Positions 11 through 58,059 of a DNA stretch of 64,000 nucleotides are shown here, one piece after another. Made by a program: the position numbers and the translations under genes. Below the pieces are notes generated by a model. That model saw nothing but the letters and a program-made list of their open reading frames with translations. It was not told where the DNA came from and did no database searches. Numbering within the stretch: position 1 is the stretch's first letter; each line of letters starts with the position of its first letter. This DNA is from Schmidtea nova (taxonomy: Eukaryota). Location of the stretch: assembly GCA_044892505.1 (NCBI GenBank), contig CM097882.1, positions 53,320,001 to 53,384,000 on the forward strand. Reading direction: 5' to 3'.

Positions 11-14978
<14,968 letters not shown>

Positions 14979-21435: not shown

Positions 21436-24400
21436 ATGATTAATACCGATGCGATAGACCCTTTAAAAAAGTGTTTTAAAGTCCCAAATCAAAAGCTTAT
21501 TTTGCTTGAAGATGAAGAATTCGAACATCAAACGTTGAGAAACCTTATTGTGTCGTCAAACAAAATCATTCCGGTTTGAAATTCAATTGAAAAGTCCAAT
21601 TAATTTTCACTTATTTTTAGAATGAAGATAGGTCTTTTATTGTCTTTGATTTTGGTGCGATTGTTTCTCAGTACACTCGCATGAGAAATCTCATTCCGCG
21701 AGCATATCCGTTTTTTGCAATAAAGTGTATGGCGGATAAACAGATAATTTCTTTATTGGGGAGCTTAGGCGCAGGATTCGATTGTGCTAGTTGGGATGAA
21801 ATAAAAAATGCTTCATTAGCTTTGCCCAAACCAACTGGGACATTTCCAGAAAAGTTTCATCCGTTAAATTCGGAAAAAATTATATTTTCTCATCCATTCA
21901 AATTTGTCAATGTAAATTTAAAAAATTGTAAATTTTTTATCTACAGTTTGTAATAGGAAATGGTTAATGCTTCGAAGATTGGAGTGGAATTTACGGTATT
22001 CGACACTGTAGAAGAGCTATTTTCTATTTCAAAATGTTGGCCACAGGCAAAATTACTTTTGAGAATTTTACCACCAAAACAATTCAAGGCTTTTGCACAA
22101 TTGGGGAAAAAATTCGGAGCTGATCATACAACGGCCAAGACTTTAATTACGTGCGCAAAAGAATTGAAAATTAACTTGGTTGGCGTTTGGTAAATAATTT
22201 CATTTAAATGTTTTTGTTATCTTTTTTTCATTAACATCTTTTATTTTCCCCTTTAATCTTTTTTGCCTATTTCGTAAATTTTTAATTCTTTATAAAGATT
22301 ATAGATTAATATATTTTTTTATATGTACACCTTTTTTTGAAAAAGGCTGTGCCGAAAATTCATGTACTTGAAAAAAATTTGATTTAGTATTCATAAAAAA
22401 ATTTCTTTTTAATTTTAGAAACATTATTTTTTTAGAAATTTATTTTCATGGAAATATGCATTCGATTCTCACAGAAATATTCAGTATTATATTTATATTT
22501 ATATTATCACCGTTTAATTATTTGAAATCACAAAAATAGCTTTTGAAATAATGTGACGCTGTAAGCGATATAAATCTAGCAATTTAAAACGTTTTCAAAA
22601 CAATATTTGATGTTAAATAAAATGATAAAATGAAATTTGGTTTTCGGACTAGTTTTAAAAATTAATTGGCTTTTATTGGTATCATGGATCAGTCAAAGTA
22701 ATCAAAGCTTTTACATTAAAACGTATGTTTTATTCTGCTAAAGAGTAAAAGAGTTCATCATATCCATCAGTTGTGAACAGGAACTAACTGTAACCTCCAG
22801 GACACCAACAACCACAGAAATATTTTGATAAATATCATTATCATTATAATCTGTGCTATTATTNNNNNNNNNNNNNNNNNNNNNNNNNNNNNNNNNNNNN
22901 NNNNNNNNNNNNNNNNNNNNNNNNNNNNNNNNNNNNNNNNNNNNNNNNNNNNNNNNNNNNNNNNNNNNNNNNNNNNNNNNNNNNNNNNNNNNNNNNNNNN
23001 NNNNNNNNNNNNNNNNNNNNNNNNNNNNNNNNNNNNNNNNNNNNNNNNNNNNNNNNNNNNNNNNNNNNNNNNNNNNNNNNNNNNNNNNNNNNNNNNNNNN
23101 NNNNNNNNNNNNNNNNNNNNNNNNNNNNNNNNNNNNNNNNNNNNNNNNNNNNNNNNNNNNNNNNNNNNNNNNNNNNNNNNNNNNNNNNNNNNNNNNNNNN
23201 NNNNNNNNNNNNNNNNNNNNNNNNNNNNNNNNNNNNNNNNNNNNNNNNNNNNNNNNNNNNNNNNNNNNNNNNNNNNNAATTAAATAATACCATAAATAAA
23301 TAAAATGATTGAGAGAAAATACTAGAAAAATGATGTAATGTTTTGTAGATCTGAGAATAAGGAATGAAAGTAAGAAATTGAGAAACGAGTAAATAATACA
23401 AAATAAAAGAAATTAAAAGAAGGTAATTGTTACTTAACATGTACAAAAAGAAAAAGGGAATTACAAAATTGAAAAAAAAACAAGTGGGAAATTTATATCT
23501 CGGCAGCTTAGCAAAGATAACGAAAGTTAACTGGAAGAATCGGGAAACTTAAAAAGGGAAATAATCAAAAATCATTTATCTTGACAGCTGTCAGATATAG
23601 TAGGGAACCATAAGGGAAAATGAAACGCGCTGGAGGCAAAAAACAAAAATAATCTTATCTACAAGAGAATGATAAGCTATAAAAGGGAGGAACCACAGTG
23701 GATTTGAGATGGAAAAATTCTAAAGGTTGGAAAAAATAAATAAATTAGTCGAGACAAATTTGGAGAATAAGAATTGTGGTAAAGGATACTGATAAAGAAT
23801 TTATTGAGTCAAATAAAGACTGTATTTTGGAAAACGTGAAATCAAAGAAAATTTAGAAAAGATTAAATTAAACGTAGTAAAACAAGAATTTATCGAACCG
23901 AAGCCTAACGAGTAAACTAACTAAGTCAAAGTAAGAGAAAAACCAGATCTATTTGCAAATTGTTGAATTCAAGTCAGCAGTGAGACGTCGTTAAATTTTA
24001 AGTGTTCTACTTTGGTGCTATTCTTCATGAAGTGTCATAATAAGCACTGTATAATAACCTGTGATGATATTGAATTTGTCATTGTAATTTGTGTGACCAT
24101 TTGGGATCAATAAAGATTTTTATTGTCTGGAAATTGTTATTTTGTAGGTCAAATATAGGACGCCCAGTCACAGAATTAATTGATAAATTTATATTTCACC
24201 AACAACCCAATAAATCAACATAATTATTATTATTATTACTTAAATAAGCATGGCAAAGATAAACTTCACTCATATAACTTCTAGATTGATTTTTAATAAA
24301 TTGAAAATATAATTTATTAAAATAATATTTTAAATTTATTTAAATATATTTTATAATTTGTTTTAATACATTGAATTAAACATGTTTTTTAGCAACTCTT

Positions 24401-27400
24401 TAAATCATTATGAATTATATTTTGAATAGCTTCACTGATCCTACTTAATTGAATTTGTGAAGCTAGTTTTTGAAGTTTCGAATTATTTAGATCTAAAATA
24501 GACGAATAAATACGAATTCTCCATCTGAATAATGATGTTTAGCTCACGCAATATTCCAAGAAATAACAAAACTGACTTCTATTGCGTTTTTCAGTATGTT
24601 TGCTATTAGGATTTTCATCCTTTAAAACATTAAAATCAGTTTTACAACAATTTGAATCCATGACTTTTATTTCAGAAAAATATATGTTATCAAAATAATT
24701 TGTTATTTAAACAAATTTCCAAAAAATATTTTTCTAAATAAAAATATTTTTATATTTTAAAAATCAATCTACAAGTTAATTTTTGAAAATTTAAAAATTT
24801 CTTAAATCTTCCAACTTCCTCATATTTGCAAAATGATGTTATGGTTGTTTGCTTAGTTAATAAGCTTGATTTTAACGATTTAAGCTTAACTTTCCTCAAT
24901 TCAGATACAATTGGAAGCTCAAGTGAAAAATTAAATATGACTTGCATCATAATGTCTCTTCAAGTGACCAACTTTATATTGTACAAGTGAACTCTGGTAA
25001 ATTAGACATGTTGGCTTGCCACCTTGATCAACACATCTTAATTCACCTTCGCACTTAGACTGAAATCCTCTTTTCTTCAAAATATTTTCTTTTTTGTTGG
25101 TGGATTTCAATTTTTTATGACTTCTTTTAACACTGAAATCTCATTTAGTTCCAAGTTCTTGGGATTGTGATTTATTTAATTAATGTATTAAGTATTTCAG
25201 TGAAAAATACTTCTAGCAATTAATTATATAGTCTTGAATAAAATGCAAATTTATCACTGACGTTTATCAGATCAAGATAATAATTAAACTGATTATTTTT
25301 TATTAATCAACTTGTGGATTGTTAAGTATAACAACTTTTAATAAAAAAATTGATTTACAAAAATGTTTAAATTACTCACTTTTAATCACACTGTTAAAAT
25401 TTCTTATTTAAAAATATGAAATTAATATATTTGCATTTTATATATAGAAATATTATTATTATTAAATTATTTTATTTGATAAAAAAACTAATTAAAATAT
25501 TGTGGCTCGTGATCCACCATTCGTTAACGTCTGTGAAAATCTATTCTATTTTTTAACCATAATCCAACTACTCATGTCTGCAAAACCAATGATGCTAACG
25601 ATGTATTTTTAGTTTTCACGTAGGAAGTGGTGTAGAAGAGATGGATGCTTGGTCTCAGTGTATTGAATATAGTGCTAAAATATTTCAAATAATGGAAAAG
25701 GCAGGATATAAACCATATTTATTAGATATAGGAGGCGGCTTTCCCTCAATGAGCATGATAAATTCAACAGAAAATACAGAAAACCAACTTCAATTTGGCA
25801 AAGAATGCCAAAATATTAACATGGTTTTAGATAAATATTTTCCCGCCTCGGAAAATTATGTAATAATTTGTGAACCAGGCGCTTATTTTACAAATGGTTC
25901 TGGTTGTTTGTTTTGTCAGGTAATTAAATATTCCTATGATAAATTAAAAGATTTCGAGTAGGTTATTGGAAAAATAGAAGAAAATGATGTAAATGAACAA
26001 ATAAATAATAATGAAATGGTAAATATTTATTTGTTTTAAAAGAATTATGTTTAATAAAAATTAATTATTTGATAATTTAATTAATATTATAAAATGAATA
26101 TTTTTTATCATTTACAAGGTTGAGTTTTCTAGAGCAATTATTTTATGTTTTTAATAAAAATAAAAATAGATTTTCTTAAATCGGTTATATGAAGATTAGT
26201 ACAGATCTGTTAAATGTAATTTTGGGAAATTTTATTTTAAATAATAAAAAATAAAAGTTTGTTTTGTAAACCATTTTTAGCGTTTGTTCAAAACTTCGCT
26301 TATTTGATCTAATTTTGCTTAAATGGAATTTAATCGTAACGATATCTGCAAATTAATCTATTATTATTGCAAGAGAGGCCTGTTGACCTCTGAAATTATT
26401 GTTGTAATAAATGCCAGTCTTCTTAATAGCCCCGTAACTCAAAGAACACACAAAGGTTCGGTTTTAAATTTCAATCACATCAATTTCACATTCAAAGAGT
26501 TGGAACGGTTAGATTGTCCTTCACTTAATATTGATAAGAAGGCCATTCGTGGCCATCGTCTGTAGCCACGTTTAGAAATGTTGGGTTATTAATTTGAGTC
26601 TGTTTAGTTTCTGACTCCTCGTGCTCCTTTAATAACGATATAACTGAGACCCAACACAATAAATTTTATTTATTCAAATCTGAGAATTCACAACAACTAA
26701 AATCAGTACAATCTTTATTGTTTCTACACTCTCTTTCTGCACTCTTTGTCTAAGCGATAAGGGTAGGTCTACCAAGGGTAGATTGCCATTTCTGATATGC
26801 TTGATTGGCTAATGTTACTGCACGAAAATCTCCTTTTCACTTACTCAATCTTTATAACTGGCGATAATTCTCTTCGATCACACTGACAATTTTCTGTTTT
26901 TCTTGCCGCTTTTATAGTTTACCAATTTGTCAATAAATTGATTATGTTTTCCAAACTTGCGATCAAATTCGATTATAATTTTCCGTAATTGGAATTTTGA
27001 TAATTATAATTCGCACTAATTTGATCCGCGCTTTTGTTAATTCGTTTACGTCTCGGGTTTCCCTTTGCTCGGGCTCTCTACTAGCCCTGGTCTCCCATGA
27101 ACTCGGACTTCCTCTTGACTCGGGTTTTTGAATATCTTTTTCTGGGGACCCCACCATTGATATTTTATTATCATATTCGTGCTCATCTCTCCATTTGCCA
27201 TCCGAACATACCAATTTCCCCTGTTAAATCTTTATTTTTTATTTTTCAAATTTTTAATTAATTTTTTGTACTTATTTATTAATTGTGAATTTCACGTTTT
27301 TCAGCCTTTTTATTGATCTTCTTTCAACATTCGTATTGATCCATATTTTTTACCAACAATCACCAACGGATAATTTCAAGGACTTTTATATTGGCCTATT

Positions 27401-30400
27401 TCTCCTGTTTCAATTAATCTTTCAACCAACTCAACAATTTTATATTCCAAATACATCTGCTGCAGACGAGGATGTTGTAAAAGTGGTGACTCTTTGACTG
27501 TTATTTTATGATATCGTTGTTGTATGATCGAGATAATATGTCGAAGACATAAATATTGTTTCATAATTTTTGTGGCTTTTTATATTCTGAAAACAATTAC
27601 ATTCCGTACCCTATCTTCATTTGAAAAATTTTCTTCAATTAACGCAGAATCAATATAATTAACTTCTATTAACTTTATACCAACTCTTCATAACATTGAT
27701 TCCACCTATAAAATGTGGATGAATTTTTAAAACAATTAAGATATCAATTAATCGAAACTTATCATTCCATCTAACATTGACCCATGTTGATCCCATTTAG
27801 AAAAATATTTCACTAAGCATAATGTTTGCATCTAGTAAAAATATTATTCCAATCTTTTGTCGGCAGTTATTGCTCATAACTGTTATAGCAGCTCATGTAT
27901 CCCACAGTATATCAATTCCAAGATTTTCATTCTGATCCACTGTTTCCATCACTTGACTGATACATCACATCTTTTAAACTTCATTTTGATTTAATTGAAT
28001 ATTTATTGTCTCGAATCCATTGAAAAAATGTAAGCTAAGCAACAGGGTTATTCGTTTTTTTCTTGCATTACATCATGATTTATTAAATTTTCAAATATTT
28101 TCAATTTGTGTACATATAATCGGTCTGTTATAATTTTGGCTTCTATTTTTCATGAGATTACAATGTCTATATATGTATCCTTGTTTTCCATATATTAGAC
28201 ATTCATTTTTTAATGAACATTGGAAACGTAAATGGTTGCTTTCGCCCCAACAGTAGCACTGACCTGGAGATAAGATTTCTTCCTTTGGCTCAGGTAATGC
28301 ACGACACTTGTTATATAACTTCTTTGCTTGATGTTTCATTGAAAAAATGGCCAATATCTTTGATTTCCATTTCCGTCCTCATATTGTTATATTTTCTATT
28401 TGGAAATACAGAAGTATTATCATAATTATAACTTACTGTATTTCCATAACTTGTGCTTGGCACAATTTACTTAGCATCATTATTTCTGTTTTAAAATTTT
28501 CTAACATCCAGATTACTATATTTTGACAGTTGTTTATTTATATTCCGACTTTGATGTCCATGATGAAAATTATTTTCTTGTTTCAAAACCTCTGAAAAAC
28601 TAAATTTTTGAACAGCATCAACATATTTGTCAGAACGCGATTCTTGCGAATATTCTTGATTTTCAAGTAATTTAGAAGTAACTTTGAATTACAAGTTTGT
28701 AAATTATTTTTTTCTTGAAGTGGAGTACTTCTAGCTCGTTTAAAAATAATATCTTTTACAATTTTTCCACGATTAAATTCTGAACTGAAAATAGTTTAGA
28801 AAAGATTTACTCTTATTTCAAAGGAACCAAATCTTTCATCTGCTTTTTGTTTAATTTCGGCAAGTTCCACAATCATATTGGTAATCGATTTCTTTATTGT
28901 AAAGGTATCCAAAAACCATGATTTTGCTTCTTCATTTGTTATTGGTTCCTGTAGGAATGCTAAAAGCAAATAAGATTTTATTAATAGAAATTGTTCTCCA
29001 ATTGACAAGTTGGTCTTTGGCAACCGGAAATCCTGACCGATGATAACAAGAGTTGAAATGAGCAAGCTCCATGAAAGTCCGTATTGATTGATTTCTGGTG
29101 ATGGCGAATAATTGTTTAATCGAGATTGATTGTGATCCAATGTATTGATTTGTAGATTTTTTGAGTTATACATTTCAGATTTGTCTGGATAGTATATTAA
29201 TATTGATCCAGTTGATGACAAGCATCTTCCAGTTTGTACGGCTTCTGCAATCTACGGAACTGGCAATTGTTTCTTCTTTGAATATCGACTACACAATCTC
29301 CACTAGAGTAGAACTGATAATTGTTGTCATTTGATGAAAACGAGTCGCTGTGAATGTCTTGAGTTAATTGGCATATCGAATCATTGTTAACAGCTTGCAT
29401 TTTTTTTGATCAGCGTGAAAAAGTGAAAATATGTAAATATTAAAACAACATCTAATTTAATCCATTTAATAATCAATTAATTTATAAAATTGAAAATTTA
29501 ATCTAAGGCACTACAGTTCCGTTTTAAAATTATGCCATAAAACGTCTGCTTCACCGGACAATAGTAAATCGAAAACACTTATTATTCATTCAAATTTATT
29601 GTTCAATATCTCTGATCCAATTTTAATTTCATCCATTCAAAAATTCAATATATATTTATTATATACAGTCCTGCCCACTTTATTCGGATCGGGATATCTC
29701 GGATTTTTACGTATGTCGTATTGTTTTCGGATTTTTAATTTTACAATTCATATAAATTTTAATACTTAAGTCATATAAATAAGTCGTATTTTTGATTATC
29801 TATTAGCTATTGTTACTGGCATGTAAATGGGAATGTATTGATTTTTTTCTACAAATTACGCACATTAACTGTCAGTACGCAGTTGTACTAATAGAAATTT
29901 AATAATAATGCTATTTAATTGGTATCATCAATTTGATACTACATTATCGAAAGACACTTTCAACAAAACGTTTGACCATAGCTGAAGAAAATTCTCCCTT
30001 TCAGTGTAATATCTTGGATGTAGAGATATCCATAAAGTCTGTGAAATAAAGTTAAAAGCAGAACGATTGAAAACAGTTTTTGTTCAATGGGTTTTGTCAA
30101 AAGGACAGTTTTATTTCTGGAAATATCCCCACTTGTTCTGACACAGAAGGAAGTTCAAGAAACACACCAGAATAAAAAGATCGTAATATCTGGGAGACTG
30201 TGTGATATTGTTCTCGATCATTTGCCTTCAATAAATCTATACGTAGATGTCGATTCTGGTTTTGAGTGTACGGAAACCCTTACAGAATTATTGGAAGCTG
30301 AAATCATAGACTACGTTTAAAATCGAAATCAGACTGAAGACGATGGGAATGAATCGAAAGATGAAAGGCCGGTACTTACGATATTGAAAGTTAACCATTC

Positions 30401-31604
30401 ACTTAAAACAATCATGTCTTCTGCCCTCTCAAAATGCCAGGAACCGTTCATAGATGAGGTGAATAAATTTAAAGAAAGATTTGAAGCATTTATTACCAAG
30501 CCTCCAAAAAGCAGAAATCAATTATGGTCTTTCTTGAAAATAAATAAACAAGTTTTTATAACTAATCGGTTTCTTTTAAATTCCTTTATATTTTTGAACT
30601 ATGTACCAATCCTCATCCTCTAAGTTAAGAAATAAATTGGCAACTATCCAGCCATCCAAATTTGGTTAAGTGCCATATAAACTGCTGTCATAACGATGAA
30701 ATGAAGTCATTCATTTTTATTCTATATTAAATCAACGACAAATAAAAAATACCTCAAAAACAATCTATTTGATATAAATCGTATTAATTGAGACATTTTT
30801 ATAAAGTCCAACTTAAGTGGACACGACTGTATTATATTTAATTTCATCAATTTAAAATTCAAAAATAAACAAACAGTGATTATTAAAACACTGATATATT
30901 TAATGATATCATAACTATAATAATTAATAAAAAAATCTCGTTTTATATTTGTAGCATTTTACTATATTTTCAATGTCAATGGGGCTAATGTTAAAGTTGG
31001 ACAAGAATCACTAGATAATAAATAAATAATATTAATGGAGCATTTATTGTGATTAATTTGTAGACATTCAATTTAAAATTTTTATGACTTTTTAGAATAA
31101 CCAAAGTGTAAAATATTCTTATATACTTAACAACAGTTCATACCATTCTGTGGAATATAAAGCTGGTTTTGATGTGTATTCAGTAAAAGAATTCAACAGA
31201 AAAGAAAAGTTAATCAATTTACAAAATGATGTTGCTACAGAAACAAAGTGAAAATTTACCAATAAAATAATAAAATAATATTTTGTAGATTAAGCAGTCG
31301 CTTTTTGGGATATACTGTAGATGAGTTTGATTGCATAATTCCAGAAATTCAAATCCCTGAATTGGCTATGAACGACTGGTTAGCACTAGTTGATAAAGGA
31401 GCTTACACCGATGTGCATAACGAATTACCGACGATATTTTGTTCAACAACAGCAATTCCGCATTATTATTGCATAACGAAAAAACATTTATCTTCTCTGA
31501 AATCTATTATTAGACAACGCAGCACTAACAACGAGAAAGTTCTGAAAATGACCAACAGAAATGACCTTTTTGATTCAATATCTGATAACTGTTTGGTTAT
31601 GTAA
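21436..31604 (+). CDS. ODC1/AZIN-like: Ornithine decarboxylase / antizyme inhibitor family protein (PLP-dependent fold III), 497 aa, 7 exons
   Basis: Exons 21436-21573, 21621-21911, 21957-22189, 25613-25919, 25962-26018, 31096-31247, 31289-31604, all GT-AG with consistent phases (1494 nt). Motifs PFFAIKCM, GFDCASWDEI, LLLRI, KKFGA, VGVCFHVGSG, LDIGGGF, CEPGAYF, LGYTVDEFD, DWLALVDKGAYT. Confidence 0.92.
26579..29400 (-). mobile_element. Internally deleted Ty3/gypsy-like LTR element in ODC-like intron 5
   Basis: Decayed gag (WFLDTFTIKKSI...ERFGSFEIRV, similar to the gag at 57475-57960), knuckle remnant CYCWGESNHLRFQC, protease remnant LWDT*AAITV (~27890-27920), GPY/F-like remnant near 27700, PPT AGGGGAAATTGGTA, then 3' LTR 27208->26579 (TGTTCGG...CCCAACA, with AATAAA). 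No RT/RNase H/IN core and no 5' LTR seen. Confidence 0.75.
29666..30829 (+). mobile_element. Decayed pogo/Tigger-like (Tc1/mariner) DNA transposon in ODC-like intron 5
   Basis: TIR CAGTCCTGCCCACTT / AAGTGGACACGACTG with TA on both flanks (29664-65, 30830-31). Internal remnant SL*NKVKSRTIENSFCSMGF resembles the DDE_1 C-terminal AWxxVxxxTIxNCFxxxGF motif. Confidence 0.75.
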
Positions 31605-32546
31605 AATTTAAAAGTTTAAAATCTACTACCTTAACAATTTTTTATTAGAATAAATATTTTCATTTTAAATTTTTAAAACAACAAAGCTTATATTTGTTGG
31701 GCTGGTGTAATCAGAAACTAAAGTAGTATAGACATTAGGAAAAACAGAAAAAATAAATTATTTAATCCATAGACACATAATCTCGTAAAGTTAAAACAAA
31801 ACCAAATATAAATATTCTAAAAGTAACTAGAATAAACTATAACTATATAATTTTCAAAGTTATCTCTTGTGCACAAATAAATTGTTGATTACGCCTAAAG
31901 GCATTTCAACGATAATTCTTGTTTAATTTTAACAAAAAAGAATATTTATGTGTGTGTGTGTAATTGTAATTATATATGTAAATATGTGTATAAAAAACCA
32001 TCAATGAGATGTAAACGAATTATAATCAAATAAATTTGATTTAAAAATAAAATGAATTGCAAAGCAGTTTCGGCAAATAAATCAAATAAAATTAGATTAT
32101 CGAGAGAGGTGAGTGACATTGCGTTGAAATGTATTGTGATTGCCATCAACAATGATTATGCACCAAATTTCGTATGCATGACTGCACCCGTGTTCGTTGT
32201 TTTACACGTAGTGTCAACAGAAAAAAAAGAAAAACATGTGTGATAGATGATTGAGTTTCACGGTTCAGTAGTCAAAGTGAATGGTAAATGGATTGTTAAT
32301 AATTGTTACACAAAAATAGCCAAAGAATGTTTCTAAAAACAGAACATAAACATTTTTTGGAAAATACGTGCATGCAGTCTCGACAGAGTTGGCATGTGAG
32401 CATGCACGTATTGTCCGAGCGACTGGTGTTGGGGGTCAGTAAGATGAGAGAAAACCGACAGAAAAGCCGCCGCATACACTCACAGTTTTACTAACAGTTG
32501 TATAGAAATCCCGCATCAGTAGTGTACACACCGACGTCAAAAACAG

Positions 32547-34065: not shown

Positions 34066-35460
34066 ATGGCGTCACGAAATGAAAAAGAATACTTGCAGGA
34101 ATACTTATTTAAAGATAAGTTATCAAAATTGATTATATTCAAGAAGCGAGGAACCAGCGTTAAAATTGAAGATCATTTGATTCTCGTCAAAAGTTTTTTT
34201 GATCAGTTTGCCAAACACAACTTGGTAACGGAAGATGAAAAAATTAAAGTATTTTTAAAATACTTTGACGAAGAAATAGTAAAAGAGATCGAATGCTTAG
34301 GAGACATTAGCACAGCCAGAACCATAGACTGGTACGAAGAAAAGATTCTCAAAATCGTAGAAGTTAAAAAGTCAAAGACCTCAATAATTATAGATATCCT
34401 CGACGACACCAGACAGGAAAGAGATGAGACTGTGGTAGATTTTGCGAAAAGATTAAGAATGCAATGCCTAAGTTACGAAGGCGAAAAAGAAAAAATGATG
34501 AGACATGCCTTTATAGAAGGTGTGAGAAACCAAACTCTCTCGGAAGCCTTGAAGATCAGAGAGCCAAAAACGTTGGAAGAAGCTATAGAAGAGATTAAAA
34601 TGGAGCACGTGGGCGTAAAAGAAAAGGAAAACGAGTATAATAAAGTTAGGAAACTGGCTACAACGGACGAAGGGACAATAAATTTTTTAAAAAGAGAAAT
34701 TGACAGGTTGAACAAGATTATTGAAGAATTAAGGAAAGAAAAATTGAGAAAACCGAATAAAAATCAGAGAGAAGTAAGAGAAGACATTTCTTCCTATCAG
34801 CAAAAGGTTACATGTTTTAAATGTAACAAAGAAGGGTATATAGCGAGATTTTGCCTAAAAAAAGATGACATTGGAAACATTGATACAAGGACGTGCTATA
34901 AATGTGGAAAAATGGGACATATAGGAGCGAATTGCAGAATAGGTACAAATAGGATGAATGCGATTAAATGTTACGAATGTGGTGGTGGTCATTTGGCTAG
35001 ATATTGTGACAAGAGGAATAAATTCAGATATTTTCAAGAAGAAGATGAAGAGGAAGAAGAAGGTTCAGCGAGAGGATCAAAGACCGATTCTGAAGGTGAC
35101 AAGCATGTAAATACTATAACAGAAGTAAGGTTTACTAAAGGGACGAAGAAACCAAAGGAACATTTAGAAGAAAAATATGCAAATTATATAAACAGTCAAG
35201 GGGAAAAACCAAAAAAACAGTTAAATAAATACCAGTCTACAATTATCTCTAGTAGTAGACCGGAAAAAGCGCGGAATAAACCAATAACTGAATGTTACAT
35301 TGGACATCGAATGGTTAAAGTTATGTTTGATATGGGTGCAGATTTAAATGTTATTAGCCAGGAGTTGACAGATAAACTAATAAACGCAAATCCAACCATA
35401 AAGATGTTTAATTCAAAAACAAGAGTTACATGTGCTAATGGAAGCTCAATCGATGTGTAG
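34066..35460 (+). CDS. gag: Gag with three CCHC knuckles fused to aspartic protease (464 aa ORF)
   Basis: CFKCNKEGYIARFC (H->Y), CYKCGKMGHIGANC, CYECGGGHLARYC. Protease motif MFDMGADLNVI (D-T/S-G altered to D-M-G). Ends in a premature stop. Confidence 0.85.
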   Translation: MASRNEKEYLQEYLFKDKLSKLIIFKKRGTSVKIEDHLILVKSFFDQFAKHNLVTEDEKIKVFLKYFDEEIVKEIECLGDISTARTIDWYEEKILKIVEVKKSKTSIIIDILDDTRQERDETVVDFAKRLRMQCLSYEGEKEKMMRHAFIEGVRNQTLSEALKIREPKTLEEAIEEIKMEHVGVKEKENEYNKVRKLATTDEGTINFLKREIDRLNKIIEELRKEKLRKPNKNQREVREDISSYQQKVTCFKCNKEGYIARFCLKKDDIGNIDTRTCYKCGKMGHIGANCRIGTNRMNAIKCYECGGGHLARYCDKRNKFRYFQEEDEEEEEGSARGSKTDSEGDKHVNTITEVRFTKGTKKPKEHLEEKYANYINSQGEKPKKQLNKYQSTIISSSRPEKARNKPITECYIGHRMVKVMFDMGADLNVISQELTDKLINANPTIKMFNSKTRVTCANGSSIDV

Positions 35461-36162
35461 GTCAAATCCAGCTAAACATAGCAATAGGACCGATTGTGAC
35501 AAGTCACATATTTGACATTATGTCAAATATATTCCCACATGTTTATATCGGGATAAGAAGTATGAAGAAGTATGGAATCATCATTAATGCACCAGAAGAC
35601 TGCATAGAGATCCAAGGAATTAGATTGCCATTCTTATCAAAAACTATTCCAGCGGCTTCTTTAAACGAATCCCAACTGTATTAGAGAGTCGTAATAAGGT
35701 TGAAGGGAGAGACGAGACTTGGGGAGACGGTTATCAGGATTATTATAGAGTTATTGTATCAAGTAACGTACAGATGGAAACAGTCGGAGAGTATTTTATC
35801 AGAGGAATGGCAATAGATAAGGAGAACAAGAAATTAGAGAATCTTAATCAAAGTTGTGTGTTTAATGGTGAAAGAGTCAAAATGGCAGAGAGAGACATTT
35901 TGATAAGTGATTACGTGTTTAAAGTTGATGAAGGATATGTATTAGAAAAATCGATATGATGGAAGGTGGTATTAAACAGTTGCATGCAGGAACAACTTTA
36001 GGTTTTATAGAAAGATTTTACGATAAAACGGCAGAAAAGGCTACTATTGGAAGTATGTCATCATCAGAATAGCGAAGAGAAATCACGGCAGTCGATAAAA
36101 ATTTACGAAGTATAGAAGATTCTTTATATCGTACTATTAAATATAGCGAAAGAAAAGAGTTA

Positions 36163-38723
36163 ATGAAAACAATAGAAGAAATTAAGGATGTTTTTAGTAA
36201 ATATAAAATGGATATTGGGAAAATTACATCAGTACATCATAAAATTGACACTGGGAACGCCCGGCCAATTTCTTTTAAACCGAGAAAGGTACCATTAGGT
36301 CTGGAGGAAGAGGTTGACCACATGGTACAAGATTTATTAAGAGCTGGAATTGTGAGACCGAGCAAGTCAGCGTGGAATTTTCCGATTGTGGTTGTAAGAA
36401 AAAAGAATGGTGATATTAGAATGTGTGTCGATTATAGGGCAATGAACGCAAAGACGGCAAGACCAATTTTTCCAATACCAGCTAGGGAAGATCTTTTTGA
36501 TACACTTGGAGGAGCTTATGAACATGGTCTTGAGAAATGAAAATTGGATTAAGTGTGTCGTATACTTGGATGATGTTCTTATATTTGGGAGAACCATCAA
36601 AGAACATAATCAAAGATTGAGCGCTGTATTACGCCGAATTAAAGAGTCAGGACTGAAATTATCACCAGCTAAGTGTTCATTTTAAAAACATAAGTTAATT
36701 ATTTAGGACATGTCATCAATGAGAATGGGCTAAAAACTGACCCAGAGAAAATTGAAAGTATACGTTCATGGACAATGCCAACATGTAAAAAAGAATTGCA
36801 GACCTTCTTAGGATTTTGAAATTATTACCGTAGATTTATAAAAGATTATACAGCGACATCAGAAAAATTGAGTTCAGTGTTAAAGAGTGAAAATAATTTT
36901 GTGTGGAATGAAAATAGAAAAGGAGCATTTTACGAACTTAAAATCAGACTGTCAACACCGCCGGTGATGAAGGGGAATATATACCGCCAAATAATGAAGG
37001 GGAATATATACTGGACACGGACGCTTCGCACAATAGTATGGGAGCCGTTTTGTCACAGCGACAAAATGGAGAAGAACGAGTTTTGTGTTATGCATCAAAA
37101 ACCATGAGTAAGAGTCAGAGAAAATATTGTATAACAAGAAAAGAACTATTGGTAATATATACGTTTGTGCTGAAATTTAAGCATTATTTGATGGGGTCAA
37201 AGTCTTTAGTGAGAACGGACCACCAAGTGCTGAAATGGTTATTGAAATGGGATAATCCAAACACATCACAATACTGTGTTTGGAGAGCCGAACTAGAAGT
37301 CTACGACATGGTTGTCGAATATAGAAAGGGCGAAGAACACATAAACGCTGATGCGATGTCCAGGTTACCTCCATGTGAACAATGCTTACTTAAGCATAAA
37401 GAACCGATGAAGCGTCGAAACGTAAAAGTATACGATGAATTAATAGATGTTAAAAGGACAGAAAACGACGATCTAGAATCAGAGCGGGTTATGTGTGAAC
37501 TGAAAGTACATGAACATGATTGGGGACAAGACGAGGATGTCGACATACAAACCATAATTAAAAGGATGAAACGTTGAGATTCTCAAAATGACAGAAACGT
37601 AGAAGAGATAAGAAGAGGCAGCAGAGAATTACAAACAATATGGGCACACAGAAAAAATTAAGGATAAGGGGCGATCTACTTTATATCCAGGAGGATAACG
37701 AATACAGATTGATACTCCCAAAATTAAAGAGGAAGAAATTAATAATACAATTTCACAGTTTTCTAGGACATCCCGGAATTGAAAAAACTTATCGAATAAT
37801 AAGGAATGAATATTATTGGCCTAATATGGAGTCTGATATATCAGAAGTAATAGGAAAATGTCAAGAATGTGCACATAACAAAAACAGAAACGGTAGAATA
37901 AGGGCACCATTTCAAAGCATAATTGGAGAAAAACCATTTCAGATAATAGCAATCGACATAACAGGACCGTTCAAGACAACACAGAAAGGATTTAGGTATA
38001 TACTGGGTATAATCGATTACTTTTCGAAATATATAAGTTTAATATCAATGAGGAATATCGAGACAGAGAATATTGCAGAAGCGGTGTGGTCGCAGTGGAT
38101 TTCAAAGTTTGGAGCACCAGAACAAAATACACTCAGATTGTGGAAGTACTTTCCAATCAAGATTGTTTGCCGAATACTGTAAAATATTAGGAATTAGGAA
38201 GACAGTTACCTCACCTTACTACCCACAGAGTGATGAACTGGTAGAACGACTATTTGGAACTGCAAAAGGTATGATTGCAGCGATGTTAGAAGAGAAGAAG
38301 AGCAAAAACTGGAGTGTAGTATTGCCGGTAATAGAGTTCGGATTAAGAACTACAATACAAAAGTCAACGAATTATTCACCATATGAAATAGTATTTGGAA
38401 ATCAAGCAAGATTACTCATATCAGCAATAAAGGTTAATACAAGATATTTTCAAGACTATGACGATTACGTCCAACAGCTGCAACTAAATTTATCAGATAT
38501 TCACAAGAAAGTAACGGAAAATATGGAGAAAAAAAGAGAGTGCATCGCCGCAAGATATAATCAGAATCGATGGCACAAAAAATTGATAGTAGGAGATAAG
38601 GTAATGATAAAGAATGAAGACAGAAGGGGTTTCGAGAAGAAGTATATAGGGCCATTCATAATAGAAGAAATAATGGATAAATGGATCCATGTATTATATA
38701 GTGACAAAGCTAAAAAAGAATAA
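36163..38723 (+). pseudogene. pol: pol remnants (RT, RNase H, integrase) with frameshifts, stops and an RT deletion
   Basis: PSKSAWNFPIVVVRKK, RMCVDYR, YLDDVLIFG, DTDAS, LVRTDHQ, HHCC (H..GHPG..CQEC), IAIDITGPF, IHSDCGSTF, YIGPF. RT jumps from DTLGGA directly to LMNMVL, so the motif block in between is missing. Confidence 0.9.
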
Positions 38724-52102: not shown

Positions 52103-53743
52103 TTATTTTTTATATTGAAAATCCGCGACTAGCGCTAAATGGTCACTGGGGAAATCTTTATTTGGAAGAGCTTGTTCACGCGTAACTTCCTCTAATGATG
52201 GCAACGGCACAGTACTCTTACACAACAGGTCGTTAGAGCTGTAAAATATATAATCTAGTTCTCCTGAGAAATCCAGAACGTAGTTAGTGAACGGACTATT
52301 ATAAGCTGATCTCAACAATAAATCATGATTCAAATACAAGCTTAACTCTTCTCCATCTGGCAATAAATGCTCCACAGCAACAGATCCGTTGAGCACTAGA
52401 TTGATCGTGTCACTATTCCGGAAATCATTAAAATCGCCAATCAAAACGACTTTAGCTTCGGGATATTTGCGCTTTATTGAACTGATTTGAAAAAGAATTG
52501 CTGCCACTTGAATATATCTAATAATATCAGCGGACGGTTTGAAATACAAATGGGTATTCAAAACGATCAATTGGTGATCAGCGGCCTGGAGAACACAGCC
52601 AGCAACGCACTGCTTAAGTTTGATCCAATTCTGGAGCAACGGAGAGGATTTCCTAATAAAATTCACGATTTCCCCAAAGCCCTCCAAGTGGCCACTGTTC
52701 AAAACTAATTTCGAAATCGACTCCACGCAGACATTTTCAACGAGTTCAAATTTCGATTTTCTCCACAAAATAGCCTGGCCTTCCATCGACAGTAAATCTT
52801 TCGTTTGAAACAGCCCATCGAAATAGTTACTGGCAAAGAACGGGTAGAGAAAATGTCGATAGATGTGCGATTCGACTTCCTGCAGGCAGATGATGTCGCA
52901 ATGATAATTGGATATTTCTTTTATCAGCAAATCTTTTCGGTAATCCGCATTTAAATACTCATCGGGACAGTGGCGAAATGTTTGTCTGCCGACTTCGGTT
53001 TCTGAGTAGATGCTTGCCAGTAAATTATAACTCAATATTCTGAACTCATTTTGTTCATTGTTATAATCACAAGTGTGATTCCATCGATTTTTAAGTGCAA
53101 TTTGTGACGGGCCTATTTGGATAGGGGTTGTTGATATGTTTTCAAAGACAATAAGCTCATTAAAACAAGAAGATTTTAATTTTAAAAAATGACTATTGTA
53201 ATTTTCTTTGAGTAAAACAGCGAAACCAGAATCGACTTTTTTCCAATCGCGTTTATTTAACGATACAAACCACTGGAAGCTTATATCGGATAATTCGCCC
53301 TGTTCCATGTCAATTTGCGGGAAAACAAAGGTATCTGTCAACAAGATTTTCGGTAATTTTATTGAGATAATCAATGGTACATTTAAAACAACCCTATAAT
53401 CAATTTTATTTATTTTCACAATTGTGTGCTCAATTAAAACATCTTTCAGTGACATGTTTAAAATATTTTCATCGAATATATGCTTTTCATTGATTATCGT
53501 GACATCATTTACTAATATTTCGGGATTTTCTTTGGATTCTAGTAATAATTTTTGTTTCTTTTTTCTTGATATCTTTTTTTCTAGCACATTATTGATTTTA
53601 AACTTAAATCGATTGATAAAATTAGACAAATCTTCCGTTTGGGAACGCAAGAATGAGAAATTTTCCTTAAAAAGCGAATGATAATTATAAACAAAGTCTA
53701 TCCTCATTTTGTCTGGCATTGATTTAGGAAATCTGATGTACAT
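52103..53743 (-). CDS. PDE12: 2',5'-phosphodiesterase 12 (CCR4/nocturin/angel EEP-family deadenylase), single coding exon, ~546 aa
   Basis: SYNLLA, DIICLQEV, EGQAILWR, NTHLYFKP..DIIRYIQ, GDFN, FTNYVLDFSGELDYIFY and PSDHLALVADF motifs, plus a long PDE12-like N-terminal region. First ATG at 53743. The frame is open to an AG acceptor at 53815, so the true start may lie upstream. Confidence 0.88.
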   Translation of the reverse strand: MYIRFPKSMPDKMRIDFVYNYHSLFKENFSFLRSQTEDLSNFINRFKFKINNVLEKKISRKKKQKLLLESKENPEILVNDVTIINEKHIFDENILNMSLKDVLIEHTIVKINKIDYRVVLNVPLIISIKLPKILLTDTFVFPQIDMEQGELSDISFQWFVSLNKRDWKKVDSGFAVLLKENYNSHFLKLKSSCFNELIVFENISTTPIQIGPSQIALKNRWNHTCDYNNEQNEFRILSYNLLASIYSETEVGRQTFRHCPDEYLNADYRKDLLIKEISNYHCDIICLQEVESHIYRHFLYPFFASNYFDGLFQTKDLLSMEGQAILWRKSKFELVENVCVESISKLVLNSGHLEGFGEIVNFIRKSSPLLQNWIKLKQCVAGCVLQAADHQLIVLNTHLYFKPSADIIRYIQVAAILFQISSIKRKYPEAKVVLIGDFNDFRNSDTINLVLNGSVAVEHLLPDGEELSLYLNHDLLLRSAYNSPFTNYVLDFSGELDYIFYSSNDLLCKSTVPLPSLEEVTREQALPNKDFPSDHLALVADFQYKK

Positions 53744-54050
53744 CAGACAGATAAAACGTTTTACATAAACAGTTCGCAAAGTCCCACTGATAAATAGTCT
53801 AATGTGACTGGCAATCTAAAATATAAAAATAGCTTTAAAGTAAATTACTATGCAGTGAATTACGCAATATTTATTACAATTTATAAAGATTATTGATTTA
53901 TTTTATATTTAAAAATGATTAGAAAAGAGTTTTAGTTTAATTAATAGCCCTATCAAATTTTTTATAAAATGCATTTAATCATATTTTTTTAAATTTTGCT
54001 TTCGATAAATGTGTGAATATTTAAACAAAATACGAATAGTGGTTAATCCA

Positions 54051-57000
54051 TGTATGATTAAGAATTATTAAATATACAGGGTTTCTCATTTTATAGAGTA
54101 ACTATCTTAATATCAGACATCAAGAATAATAATATTTATTTCAAAAACAACTCGTTCTCGTTGATTATTTAAACAACATAGTTTTTTAATAATCATTACA
54201 TTACTTTCCCCTCCTCAACTTTGATGCCATCTCTTCAGCCATTCTATCTGTCTCGGTCGTGTAGCATCCGGAAATTGTAGCTCGACCTGGTGTTCCGACA
54301 AAAATCTAACAATCTTATATGGTCCATCGTATTGCATGTCATTCTTATTTCTTCTGCGTGGCTCCCGTCGGACCAATACTTCCTCCCCCACTTCAAAAGA
54401 ACGTTTACCTCTTCGATCTTTTTCTAAAATTCTCATTCTATCCGCCGCTAACTTAGCATTCTGAACCACTTTCTCGTCAACTCTTTGGCCTTTGATCTCT
54501 GATCATTGTCCATTGGTATGAAGTGACACCTTCCGTCCATACACAATCTCAAATGGAGAATATTTAGTTGCGCTTTGAAATGTCGCATTGATGCTGAATT
54601 CCACCCTTGGAAGTATCTCGCACCATTCATATCGCCTGTTGTTACTAAGAATTGAAGTCACCAGTAGATCTCTCATCGTGCGAATTACTCTTTCTACCAA
54701 TCCATTTGATTGATGTTGATATGGTGCTGAGAATTCTTGACGAATCCCTAAAACTTCGAATTTCTCTTTCATATATCTGCCTTCAAAATTTTTCCCTCTG
54801 TCTGAAAGAATACTTTCTGGCTTTCCATATTTATAAATCCAATTATGAAGTATAATCCGGAATATCGTCATTTCGTCTTGTTCTCTGTCGCAGTTAGGCA
54901 TACTAATTTACTGAACCGATCTATTATGACAACCACATATCTCTTTCCGGACCTTGTCTTTTCCATGTGTGCTACATCAACTACGATTTGTTCCAGAAAC
55001 CCGTTACTTCCGCGCGGAATAAGAAGTTCTTTCGTTCTTCCTTGATCTATTTTCCTTCTCGCACATATACTACATTCCTTTACAACGTGTCTTACTATTT
55101 CTTACATCTTTGGCCAGAAAAAACTATTTTCCATGTAATGAAAGACTTTTTTCCCCCCACATGGCATAATTCTTCATGAATCTTCTTAACCAGTTGTTTT
55201 TTATGGCTCCCTGGAACTCCTACTAAATCATTGGATTCTCTCTCTGCGATAATTAGGTCATCGTTGATCTTCAATCTGTCTTTGTGCGCATATAGGAAAG
55301 ATTTCTTGAAAAAATCCTCTTCCTCATTCAAAAATTCATTGATATAATTCCATGCTCCTTGAAAACCCTTGTCCTTCTTTTGTTCTTCCATAATTTTCAT
55401 CATGGTGCCAGTTTTTTGTATCGAATTAATATATCGTACCCTAGCTCTCTCCTTCTTCGGCTCTTCGTGTTGTGTTTGACATTGTGCGCACAACATTCCT
55501 CCAATTCTCTACAATTCATCGGCATTCCCATGTTCTACTCCTTTCCGATACTGCAATTTAAAATTATATTCTGATAAGTTCACCATCCATGTTTGGAATT
55601 GTGGACTTATCGCTTTCTTTGTCGTATTCATAAATACAAGTGCCTTGTGGTCGGTTCTCGCTATGAACTCCTTCCCATATAAGTATTGACGAAAATAAGT
55701 AACATACTCATGTAATGCCAGTAATTCCTTTCTGGTCACACAATACCCTTTTTCGTGTGATGTAAGGTGTCTCGACCCATACACAATTACTACTTCTTTA
55801 CCTTCCTCTGTGATTTGACTCAGAACGGCACCTACCGCTTCAAAACAAGCATCCGTATCTAAGACAAATACCCCGTCCATCCTAGGATAATCCAGTATTG
55901 GTGTTTTCATCAGGGCTTCTTTTAAATTCTCGAAACTTGTTTCACATTTTTGAGACCATTGTAAAGTCTTATCACACCCTGTTGTTGCTGCATATAGTGG
56001 AGCTGCCAGACGCGCATAATCTTTGACAAATCTTCGATAATAATTCGTCAGTCCCAAAAATGAGCGCAGTTGTTTCGCACATTTTGGTCTTGTAGCTTCC
56101 TTAATCACCAATATCTTTTCTTCGTTAGTTTGAATACCGAACTCACTCACGGCATGCCCTAAAAATATTAACTTATCCTTGTAGATCTTACATTTCTGCG
56201 AATTTATCTTCACGCCAGTACCTCCGATTCTTTCAAAAACTTCTTTTAGCCGGCTGTCATGTTCCGATTTATCCTTCCCGAATATGAGGATGTCATCTAA
56301 ATATACCACCGCCCCATTAAAAAGAATACCTTCTAACATAGTATTCATGAATCTCTGAAATGTAGCTGGAGCTGTTTTCTATCCGAACGGTAATCGCTCA
56401 AAACAGAACTGCCCGCTTTTCGTACTAAACGCGGTTTTCTCCCGTGACTCTGCTGCCAATGATACTTGATAATATGCTTGACCCAGATCCAATGATGAGA
56501 AAAACTTCGCTCCGGCCAAGCAATCCAGTAGCTGTGTGATATTCGGCATCGGAAAAGATTCTTTCTCTGTCAGACTATTTAGACTCCGATAATCCGCACA
56601 CATTCTGATCGATCCGTCTTTTTTCCCCATTTTGACTAATGGTGCGTTCCATGGACTCAGTTTCTTCATTCATCACTGATATTGATGCCCCCGAATCCCA
56701 TAACATTTCTACTTCAACCGTATTAACAACCATCTTATTCCATTCTCTTCCATCGCTCGTCTGATACTTCATGCTTCTTCTCCTGTCATTTCGATTTTCT
56801 TCATATATATCTGCGATCCCATTGACGAAATGTGTGCGATGGGATCATTGGCATTTTGTCTTACTTCTACTTCATGTGGTTGACACTTACTTCCGTATTC
56901 ATCTCTAAAATCATAACTAAAATCATAAATATTGATGCCCCCGAATCCCATAACATTTCTACTTCAACCGTATTAACAACCATCTTATTCCATTCTCTTC

Positions 57001-57965
57001 CATCGCTCGTCTGATACTTCATGCTTCTTCTCCTGTCATTTCGATTTTCTTCATTTATATCTGCGATCCCATTGACGAAATGTGTGCGATGGGATCGTTG
57101 GCATTTTTTCTTACTTCTACTTCATGTGGTTGACACTTTCGTATTCATCTCTAAAATCATAACTATTTATCTGCTGATCCTCTGTTTCTTTGTGTAAACA
57201 TGATATCTTCTTGACGTTGGTGTTGTAACTTCGTCGTCCATTCAGAAGGTTACGATTTCTAAAATTGTGTAAGTTCTTCCCGCAAATCAAACATCTATCT
57301 TTTAAAGGGCATTCAAAACGCCTATGTCCTTCTTCTCCGCAACAAAAACATTGACCTGATTTAAGTTCGCATGGCCTTGGTTCTGGTAACCCCATATGTC
57401 TGTTGTATAACCGTTTGGCTATATGTTTCAGAGATACAGTTATACATCTTCTTTTCACCCGTCTGCTGTCCTTTCTATCTTTGGGACTCTGATTGTTCAT
57501 ATCTTCCGTATTCTACTTTGTTTTCGAAACTTCTAGGTTCTTTTCGTATATATGGTCTTTGCTTTCCTCTCTCCAATTCCTCTCGATTCCTTAGACCTTC
57601 TTTGAATTTTTCCTCATATGACATTGGCTTTACTGCCAAAATTTCTTCAGATCTGTCCTCTGTTTTCTCATAAATTTTTGCTAAATCATTTCTCTCTTTG
57701 TGATCCATCTTAGGTTTCGTCGTAAGTACCTCTTTTAATCTTTTATCTATCACTCTGTGCATAATAATCTCACTTACAATTTCTTCCTTTGGCAATCCTG
57801 AATATAAAACTTCTTCCACAATTTTGAGAACTCGAATCTCGAAAGTAGCAAAACGTTCGTTGTCATCTTGTCTGATAGTTGCAAGATCCTTGATTTTATC
57901 AATATTGACTTTTTTATAGTGAATGTTTCTATAAACCATTCTCTAGCATCATCCTCTGATGTGCC
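54051..57965 (-). mobile_element. 5'-truncated, decayed Ty3/gypsy element
   Basis: Gag remnant, knuckle CFCCGEEGHRRFEC, protease WDSGASISVM, RT (PWNAPLV, RMCADYR, LDLGQAYYQV, YLDD), RNase H (LDTDAC, FIARTDHKAL), IN (SDRGKNF, HQSNGLVER, YDGPY). PPT GGAGGGGAAAG at ~54204-54214. Candidate 150-bp 3' LTR 54200->54051 (TGTA...TACA); this boundary is uncertain. Confidence 0.88.
56679..57165. repeat. 250-bp direct tandem duplication inside the gypsy element
   Basis: ATTGATGCCCCCGAATCCC at 56681 and 56931, with near-identical copies. Confidence 0.92.
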
Positions 57966-58059
57966 TTCGAGTAGAGTAGGGGGAGCGCCCAAGAACAGGA
58001 ACAGACCCCCCCTAAAAAATTTTTTTTACCCCCCCCCCCAAAAAAAAAAAAAAATTTTT

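Follow-up and report, generated by a model that had tools for sequence, protein, structure and literature searches.

A gene of the ornithine decarboxylase (ODC) family lies at 21436-31604 on the plus strand of a 64,000-nucleotide stretch of the Schmidtea nova genome (assembly GCA_044892505.1, contig CM097882.1; this whole stretch is referred to below as the window), and the question that it raises is what kind of protein is encoded by an ODC gene in which two residues central to catalysis are replaced. The original prediction considered it as an ODC with a dismantled active site and as a candidate independently evolved antizyme inhibitor (AZI). The analysis of the whole locus leads to another answer: the gene is probably the Schmidtea orthologue of the planarian ODC5 (Smed-odc-5/DjODC5), a lineage-specific and fast-evolving ODC paralogue whose product would not act as a normal ODC in the form of a homodimer. 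The substitutions of ODC5 type were already described in planarians and tested by RNA interference (RNAi) in 2017; what the present locus contributes to a known protein class is a further species and a gene structure.

The state of the active site was established by alignment of the translated exons with ODC chains from PDB and with the family profile. The lysine K69 is kept (AAG at 21723-25, motif FFAIKC), and D88, E94, R154, K169, G171, H197, S200, G235-237, E274, D361, D364, G387, and Y389 are also retained in the profile alignment; most of these residues, namely, K69, D88, E94, R154, K169, H197, the GGG loop, E274, D361, and Y389, had been listed as conserved in the original prediction, and the alignments bear this out. 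The two central replacements hold as well when the gene is aligned with ODC. The ligand of the pyridoxal 5'-phosphate (PLP) phosphate group, R277, is changed to Ala (EPGAY, 25881-83), and C360, which is the proton donor supplied from the partner subunit, is changed to Val (GTA at 31317-19, GYTVDEFD versus GPTCDGLD). Since these are the only substitutions at the 18 key canonical ODC residues, the description of the active site as dismantled was an overstatement. The third loss claimed at the same time, Asp332-Gly333 to Asn-Ser, results from a slip in numbering: the N-S of ILNNSSY (31132-37) aligns with D320-G321 of the VNDG motif, while residue 332 in human numbering lies in the LYDHA segment of vertebrate ODC. 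The true Asp332 probably survives as the D of GFDVY, according to the profile alignment, which is weak in this stretch, and D361, which like Asp332 binds the distal amine, is clearly kept.

The same pattern of residues is known from planarians. In Cassella et al. study (2017, Sci Rep 7:9736, PMC5574924) six ODC paralogues of Dugesia japonica were described along with five classes from Schmidtea mediterranea, and it was stated that planarians possess one antizyme and one intact ODC. According to Table 2 of this paper SMED-ODC-5 differs from the canonical enzyme by R277A and C360V only, of 18 key residues, and DjODC5 is listed with R277A, the remainder of its row being blank; ODC3 is characterized by S200N and R277T, and ODC6 by K69S and a ruined barrel with an intact C360 region. 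The ODC5 sequences are named in the supplement as JX010519.1, dd_Smed_v4_6130_0_1, and FY933339.1. Compared with Table 2, the S. nova gene carries R277A and C360V and keeps the other 16 key residues. This combination is rare, since among 150 diverse ODC-like cluster representatives Ala277 was found in 2, Val360 in 1, and both together in 0. The shared rare signature and the presence of a clade mate with the published ODC3 signature, described below, argue for ODC5 orthology. The genomic background fits S. nova as well: the GC content of the window is 29.5%, and the schNov1 genome was reported to have 28.1% GC and introns expanded by LTR/Gypsy (long terminal repeat retrotransposon) insertions (PMC11410931), in agreement with the Gypsy-filled introns observed here.

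As for the family membership, PF02784 (N-terminal PLP barrel) is matched across exons 2, 3, and 4 from profile position 3 to 246 of 247, and PF00278 (C-terminal sheet domain) gives 16.8 bits with exon 6 alone, under the 23-bit cut-off. The full-length model scores 348.5 bits with a hidden Markov model (HMM) of the family and contains the GAYT and TxDxxD motifs; residues 15-323 of the spliced model align with residues 3-303 of protein P0188. The top PDB matches of the exons compared are eukaryotic ODC chains, and the AZIN1 chains are weaker throughout, for example, for exon 4, where E is 3.6e-13 with ODC but about 1e-5 with AZIN1. The tree, built from 48 proteins, groups the gene with P0001, P0188, P0189, and P0186 with a Shimodaira-Hasegawa-like approximate likelihood ratio test (SH-aLRT) value of 98, apart from vertebrate ODCs. 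These two results uphold the part of the original prediction which stated that a catalysis-impaired ODC paralogue had evolved independently. P0186 carries S200N and R277T, which is the published ODC3 signature and suggests the presence of flatworm transcripts among the metagenome data, and P0001, P0188, and P0189 retain all key residues, like ODC-A. The clade around the gene is formed by unlabelled environmental and run-assembly proteins, P0186 and P0007 originating from JGI/IMG and P0001, P0188, P0189, and P0192 from Logan and JGI. The profile built from P0001 and exons 2-4 recovered matches dominated by relatives of P0001.

The gene is real and intact and is not a pseudogene. Its coding sequence consists of 487 codons followed by TAA and is divided into six exons by five introns, all of which are GT-AG; a signal of AATAAA/ATTAAA type is located at 31649, 3' of the stop. 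Stop codons occur at 0.074 per codon in the introns of this gene, so that a frame of such length would stay open by chance with a probability of about 5e-17; this value together with the canonical borders of all introns indicates a functional gene and rejects a pseudogene. Thus the intact frame noted in the original prediction stands, but it extends over six exons instead of seven. Two findings that were named in advance as able to refute the prediction were also looked for. An alternative exon supplying GPTCD was absent from the 64 kb when searched by tblastn with nine family members, and the same search revealed neither a second ODC copy nor a further ODC-like exon in the window, intron 4 included. 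An assembly error at the R277A codon is opposed by the sequencing runs, since the segment 25400-26100 with this codon is represented by 0.94-1.00 of its sampled words in four DNA-type runs (three samples, one study), which may include the source of the assembly itself.

The exons, all on the plus strand, share the conserved residues in the following way. Exon 1 (21436..21573, 46 codons) begins with ATG at 21436 and encodes an N-terminal extension with an open frame up to the GT donor at 21574; alone it has neither a Pfam match nor a family match of its own. Exon 2 (21621..21911, 97 codons; PF02784, E 6.5e-13) corresponds to mouse ODC residues 38-97 and includes the start of the PLP barrel with K69, D88, and E94. 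At 21795-21860 this exon contains an insertion of about 12 residues (around PKPTGTFPEKFHPLNS) compared with most ODCs, located in the loop that follows the GFDCAS motif, where P0001 and P0010 likewise have insertions. Exon 3 (21957..22189, 77 codons and 2 nt; PF02784, E 2.8e-10) corresponds to human ODC residues 123-194 and includes R154, K169, and G171 as well as the antizyme-binding-element region, in which Lys at position 125 and Phe at position 140 are found by alignment to human ODC. It is followed by intron 3 (22190..25612, GT-AG) with an N gap at 22864-23277. Because exon 3 stops at human ODC residue 194, exon 4 begins at 196, and the split codon between them supplies residue 195, the gap conceals no coding sequence, and the frame does not depend on the gap length. 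A wrong join at this gap would put K69 of exon 2 and A277/V360 of exons 4 and 6 in different gene copies, and nothing suggests so. Exon 4 (25613..25957; PF02784, E 3.5e-18) corresponds to ODC residues 196-281 and carries H197, S200, the GGG loop, E274, and the Ala at R277. Behind the 5.1-kb intron 4 (25958..31106, GT-AG) exon 5 (31107..31247) encodes the beginning of the C-terminal sheet domain in a strongly diverged form, where VNDG is changed to LNNS (31129-37) and GFDVY contains the probable equivalent of D332; this exon alone gave zero PDB or Pfam matches and was placed by the full-length profile alignment. Exon 6 (31289..31604), matched to ODC residues 352-391 and 355-413, contains the Val at C360 and the kept D361, D364, G387, and Y389, and it ends with a tail of about 60 residues and the stop TAA at 31602-04.

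The junction of exons 4 and 5 is ambiguous. The HMM built from 45 full-length family members gives 348.5 bits for donor 25957 with acceptor 31107 and 334.7 bits for the alternative donor 25919 with the alternative acceptor 31096, and both variants leave the reading frame and the residues discussed above unchanged. The tblastn matches of the clade mates extend beyond 25919, to 25949-26015, and the junction 25957/31107 retains a strand-loop-strand arrangement with the KYSY motif on both strands. The ends of intron 4 (25920-25940 and 31106-31126) carry a near-identical 12-mer, AAATATTCCTAT and AAATATTCTTAT, both of which read as KYSY in the preferred model. This likeness could be due to chance in AT-rich DNA, to two similar beta-strands, or to a target-site-like duplication left by an old insertion that turned into an intron.

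The divergence of the protein is distributed unequally. Of the 92 columns conserved in at least 90% of 170 family members 70 are kept, and 12 of the 22 lost ones fall within residues 317-399, namely, Y317, D320, G321, G324, F326, N327, P358, C360, G378, M386, N398, and G399, so that the C-terminal domain is without the VNDGxYGSFN and FNG motifs. Over the barrel (residues 40-283) the protein is 47% identical to its clade mates P0001 and P0189, but over the C-terminal domain (residues 284-410) the figure falls to 23%, compared with 40-43% in that domain for the other protein pairs examined. There is, consequently, constraint on the PLP barrel and drift in the domain by which Cys360 is supplied to the active site of the partner.

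This concentration of changes fits an idea proposed for the published planarian proteins. ODC5 and ODC6 are coexpressed in the same late progenitors of the epidermal lineage, and silencing of ODC5, ODC6, or both leads to the same wound-response phenotype at the injection site (PMC5574924). In the same study the substitutions of ODC5 and ODC6 at K69 and C360 were found to be complementary, and the authors suggested that the two might pair as an ODC5:ODC6 heterodimer in which one site is functional. The residues of the S. nova gene indicate that its product as a homodimer cannot be a normal ODC, and the likeliest, though tentative, view is that it forms one half of a dimer with coexpressed ODC6. 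In such a dimer ODC5 would contribute the barrel with K69, and ODC6, whose own barrel is ruined, would contribute the intact Cys360 loop, giving one composite and near-complete active site and one dead site. Judging from the published RNAi, ODC5 would act in late progenitors of the epidermis and in the response to wounding and would serve neither bulk putrescine supply nor antizyme titration. The more exacting version, in which the heterodimer is obligate, ODC5 is a barrel donor and no decoy, and the single composite site handles a product or ligand other than bulk putrescine, is possible but doubtful. Two facts count against the heterodimer: Ala277 would remain in the "good" site and weaken PLP binding there, and the failure of difluoromethylornithine (DFMO) to mimic the silencing phenotype (PMC5574924) does not favour a composite site that decarboxylates ornithine. 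A nonenzymatic role or a homodimer with slow and altered chemistry is also possible. If the heterodimer is true, it would be a prozyme-like arrangement acting in epidermal progenitors of an animal, that is, an unusual enzyme of a stem-cell lineage in which two broken halves make one site, and the constrained barrel together with the drifted C-terminal domain gives a concrete reason for suspecting the partnership with ODC6.

The assignment to ODC5 and the proposed function have to be weighed against several other explanations, and a number of observations speak against the assignment itself. The published ODC5 was compared via a residue table; orthology with Smed-odc-5 is the probable relation on the basis of residue signature, clade, and genome identity. 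The search of exon 4 against 1.84 billion cluster representatives gave 590 matches, none of them above 48% identity in this exon; over the full length the nearest protein found is P0001 with 37% identity, and a word search with exon 6, which sees only proteins of 0.55-1.75x query length, had zero matches. The clade mates being unlabelled metagenome or Logan proteins, its designation as a planarian clade is itself presumptive, and the position of the gene in the tree is made less secure by its terminal branch of 3.04 substitutions per site, compared with a median of 0.36. Finally, no RNA runs containing 25400-26100 were found. The reliance on the residue table and the absence of a close relative among the cluster representatives would also be expected for an unrelated dead ODC paralogue, for instance, a further one outside ODC5, which acquired Ala277 and Val360 by coincidence, and inactive ODC homologues arose repeatedly, as reported by Ivanov et al. 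(2010). Such a coincidence is nevertheless very unlikely in view of the absence of the Ala277 and Val360 combination from all 150 diverse homologues, the ODC3 signature of the clade mate P0186, and the GC content fitting Schmidtea. Still less credit is due to the explanation by a decaying or dead gene copy or by a chimeric assembly across the N gap, although the very long branch, the retroelement remnant in intron 4, the gap in intron 3 with the ambiguous exon 4/5 junction, and the missing RNA runs could all be read in its favour. It is highly improbable given that 487 codons are open with canonical splice sites throughout, that more than three-quarters of the conserved columns are kept, that the flanks of the gap meet without a break at ODC residues 194/196, and that both expression and an RNAi phenotype are on record for the published orthologue (PMC5574924).

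With the gene taken as ODC5, the remaining explanations concern what its product does. Cys360 and Arg277 mutants of trypanosome ODC have residual or altered activity, and the S. nova protein keeps K69, nearly all PLP ligands, D361, and probably D332, so that one can imagine it working alone, as a homodimeric PLP enzyme whose chemistry is slow or altered, for example, by decarboxylation-dependent transamination or with a different basic amino acid as substrate; Xenopus "AZIN2", moreover, proved to be an active decarboxylase (PMC6738921). We regard this as unlikely because 12 conserved columns of the C-terminal domain are lost, including VNDG and the FNG loop beside F397, and because silencing of ODC6, a protein without K69 that cannot be an enzyme by itself, gives the identical phenotype (PMC5574924). 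The AZI function favoured by the original prediction, in which an inactive protein resembling ODC has a higher affinity for antizyme than the active enzyme and so frees the latter, agrees with the impaired catalysis and retained fold, and planarians have a single antizyme and a single intact ODC (PMC5574924). Lys125 is a weak hint in the same direction, being present in human AZI as one of two residues shown to raise antizyme affinity (PMC3084279), but position 140 is Phe, neither the Lys of AZI nor the Met of ODC. The PLP site is conserved far beyond the needs of a pure binding decoy, while vertebrate AZINs were reported to be without K69 and C360 (PMC6738921). The published experiments contradict this function directly: because putrescine failed to rescue the ODC5 RNAi phenotype, DFMO did not reproduce it, and cosilencing of antizyme left it unaltered, the authors excluded an AZI-like role for ODC5 (PMC5574924). 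Such a role for the S. nova gene is therefore unsupported and quite unlikely.

Several other features are present in the window. Inside intron 4, at 27328-28954 on the minus strand, there is a degenerate gag/protease remnant of Gypsy type, the open reading frames (ORFs) of which have no Pfam match; tblastx aligns it collinearly with 56601-57974 (E 5.3e-25), and it represents the same Gypsy-type element as that at 54503-57975. Two bodies of Gypsy-type LTR retrotransposons, at 34066-38723 on the plus strand and at 54503-57975 on the minus strand, carry gag zinc knuckle, reverse transcriptase, RNase H, and integrase in their ORFs. Upstream of the ODC-family gene a multiexon gene of myosin II heavy chain is located at 3612-14339 (plus strand) with several N runs within it, one exon of which matches Myosin_tail_1 with E 9e-43. 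An intronless ORF of 558 codons at 52103-53779 on the minus strand is PDE12-like and belongs to the endonuclease/exonuclease/phosphatase family; it has 73% identity to UniParc UPI00060F577B and 49% to an ENA protein, and its named matches are PDE12 and CCR4-type nucleases.

The gene can be compared with four known systems. It resembles the vertebrate AZIN1 and AZIN2 as an ODC paralogue predicted to be without normal decarboxylase activity and in the Lys at position 125, known from human AZI (PMC3084279). It differs from them by independent origin, forming a separate clade and matching ODC chains better than AZIN1, by the presence of K69 and the PLP site, K69 and C360 being reported as absent from AZINs (PMC6738921), and by the ODC5 RNAi results, which speak against antizyme titration (PMC5574924). 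In trypanosomatid prozyme systems, where a dead paralogue activates an impaired enzyme such as deoxyhypusine synthase (PMC3663545), the logic is the same as that proposed here, with two defective paralogues, a heteromer, and an active site shared at the subunit interface; the enzyme family and the lineage are different, and the heterodimer of ODC5 and ODC6 is at present hypothetical. The inactive ODC homologues of invertebrates surveyed by Ivanov, Firth and Atkins (2010, J Mol Evol 70:289) are likewise ODC duplicates of particular lineages in which key catalytic residues were lost; that survey, as summarized in PMC5574924, covered mosquitoes, Ciona, amphioxus, and Hydra, whereas the planarian set came in 2017. 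The closest counterpart is planarian ODC5, with which the gene shares an identical pattern across the 18 key residues, a weak similarity to vertebrate ODC compared with the other paralogues, and membership in a multiparalogue ODC family of a planarian-type genome, the difference being that it comes from another species, Schmidtea nova.

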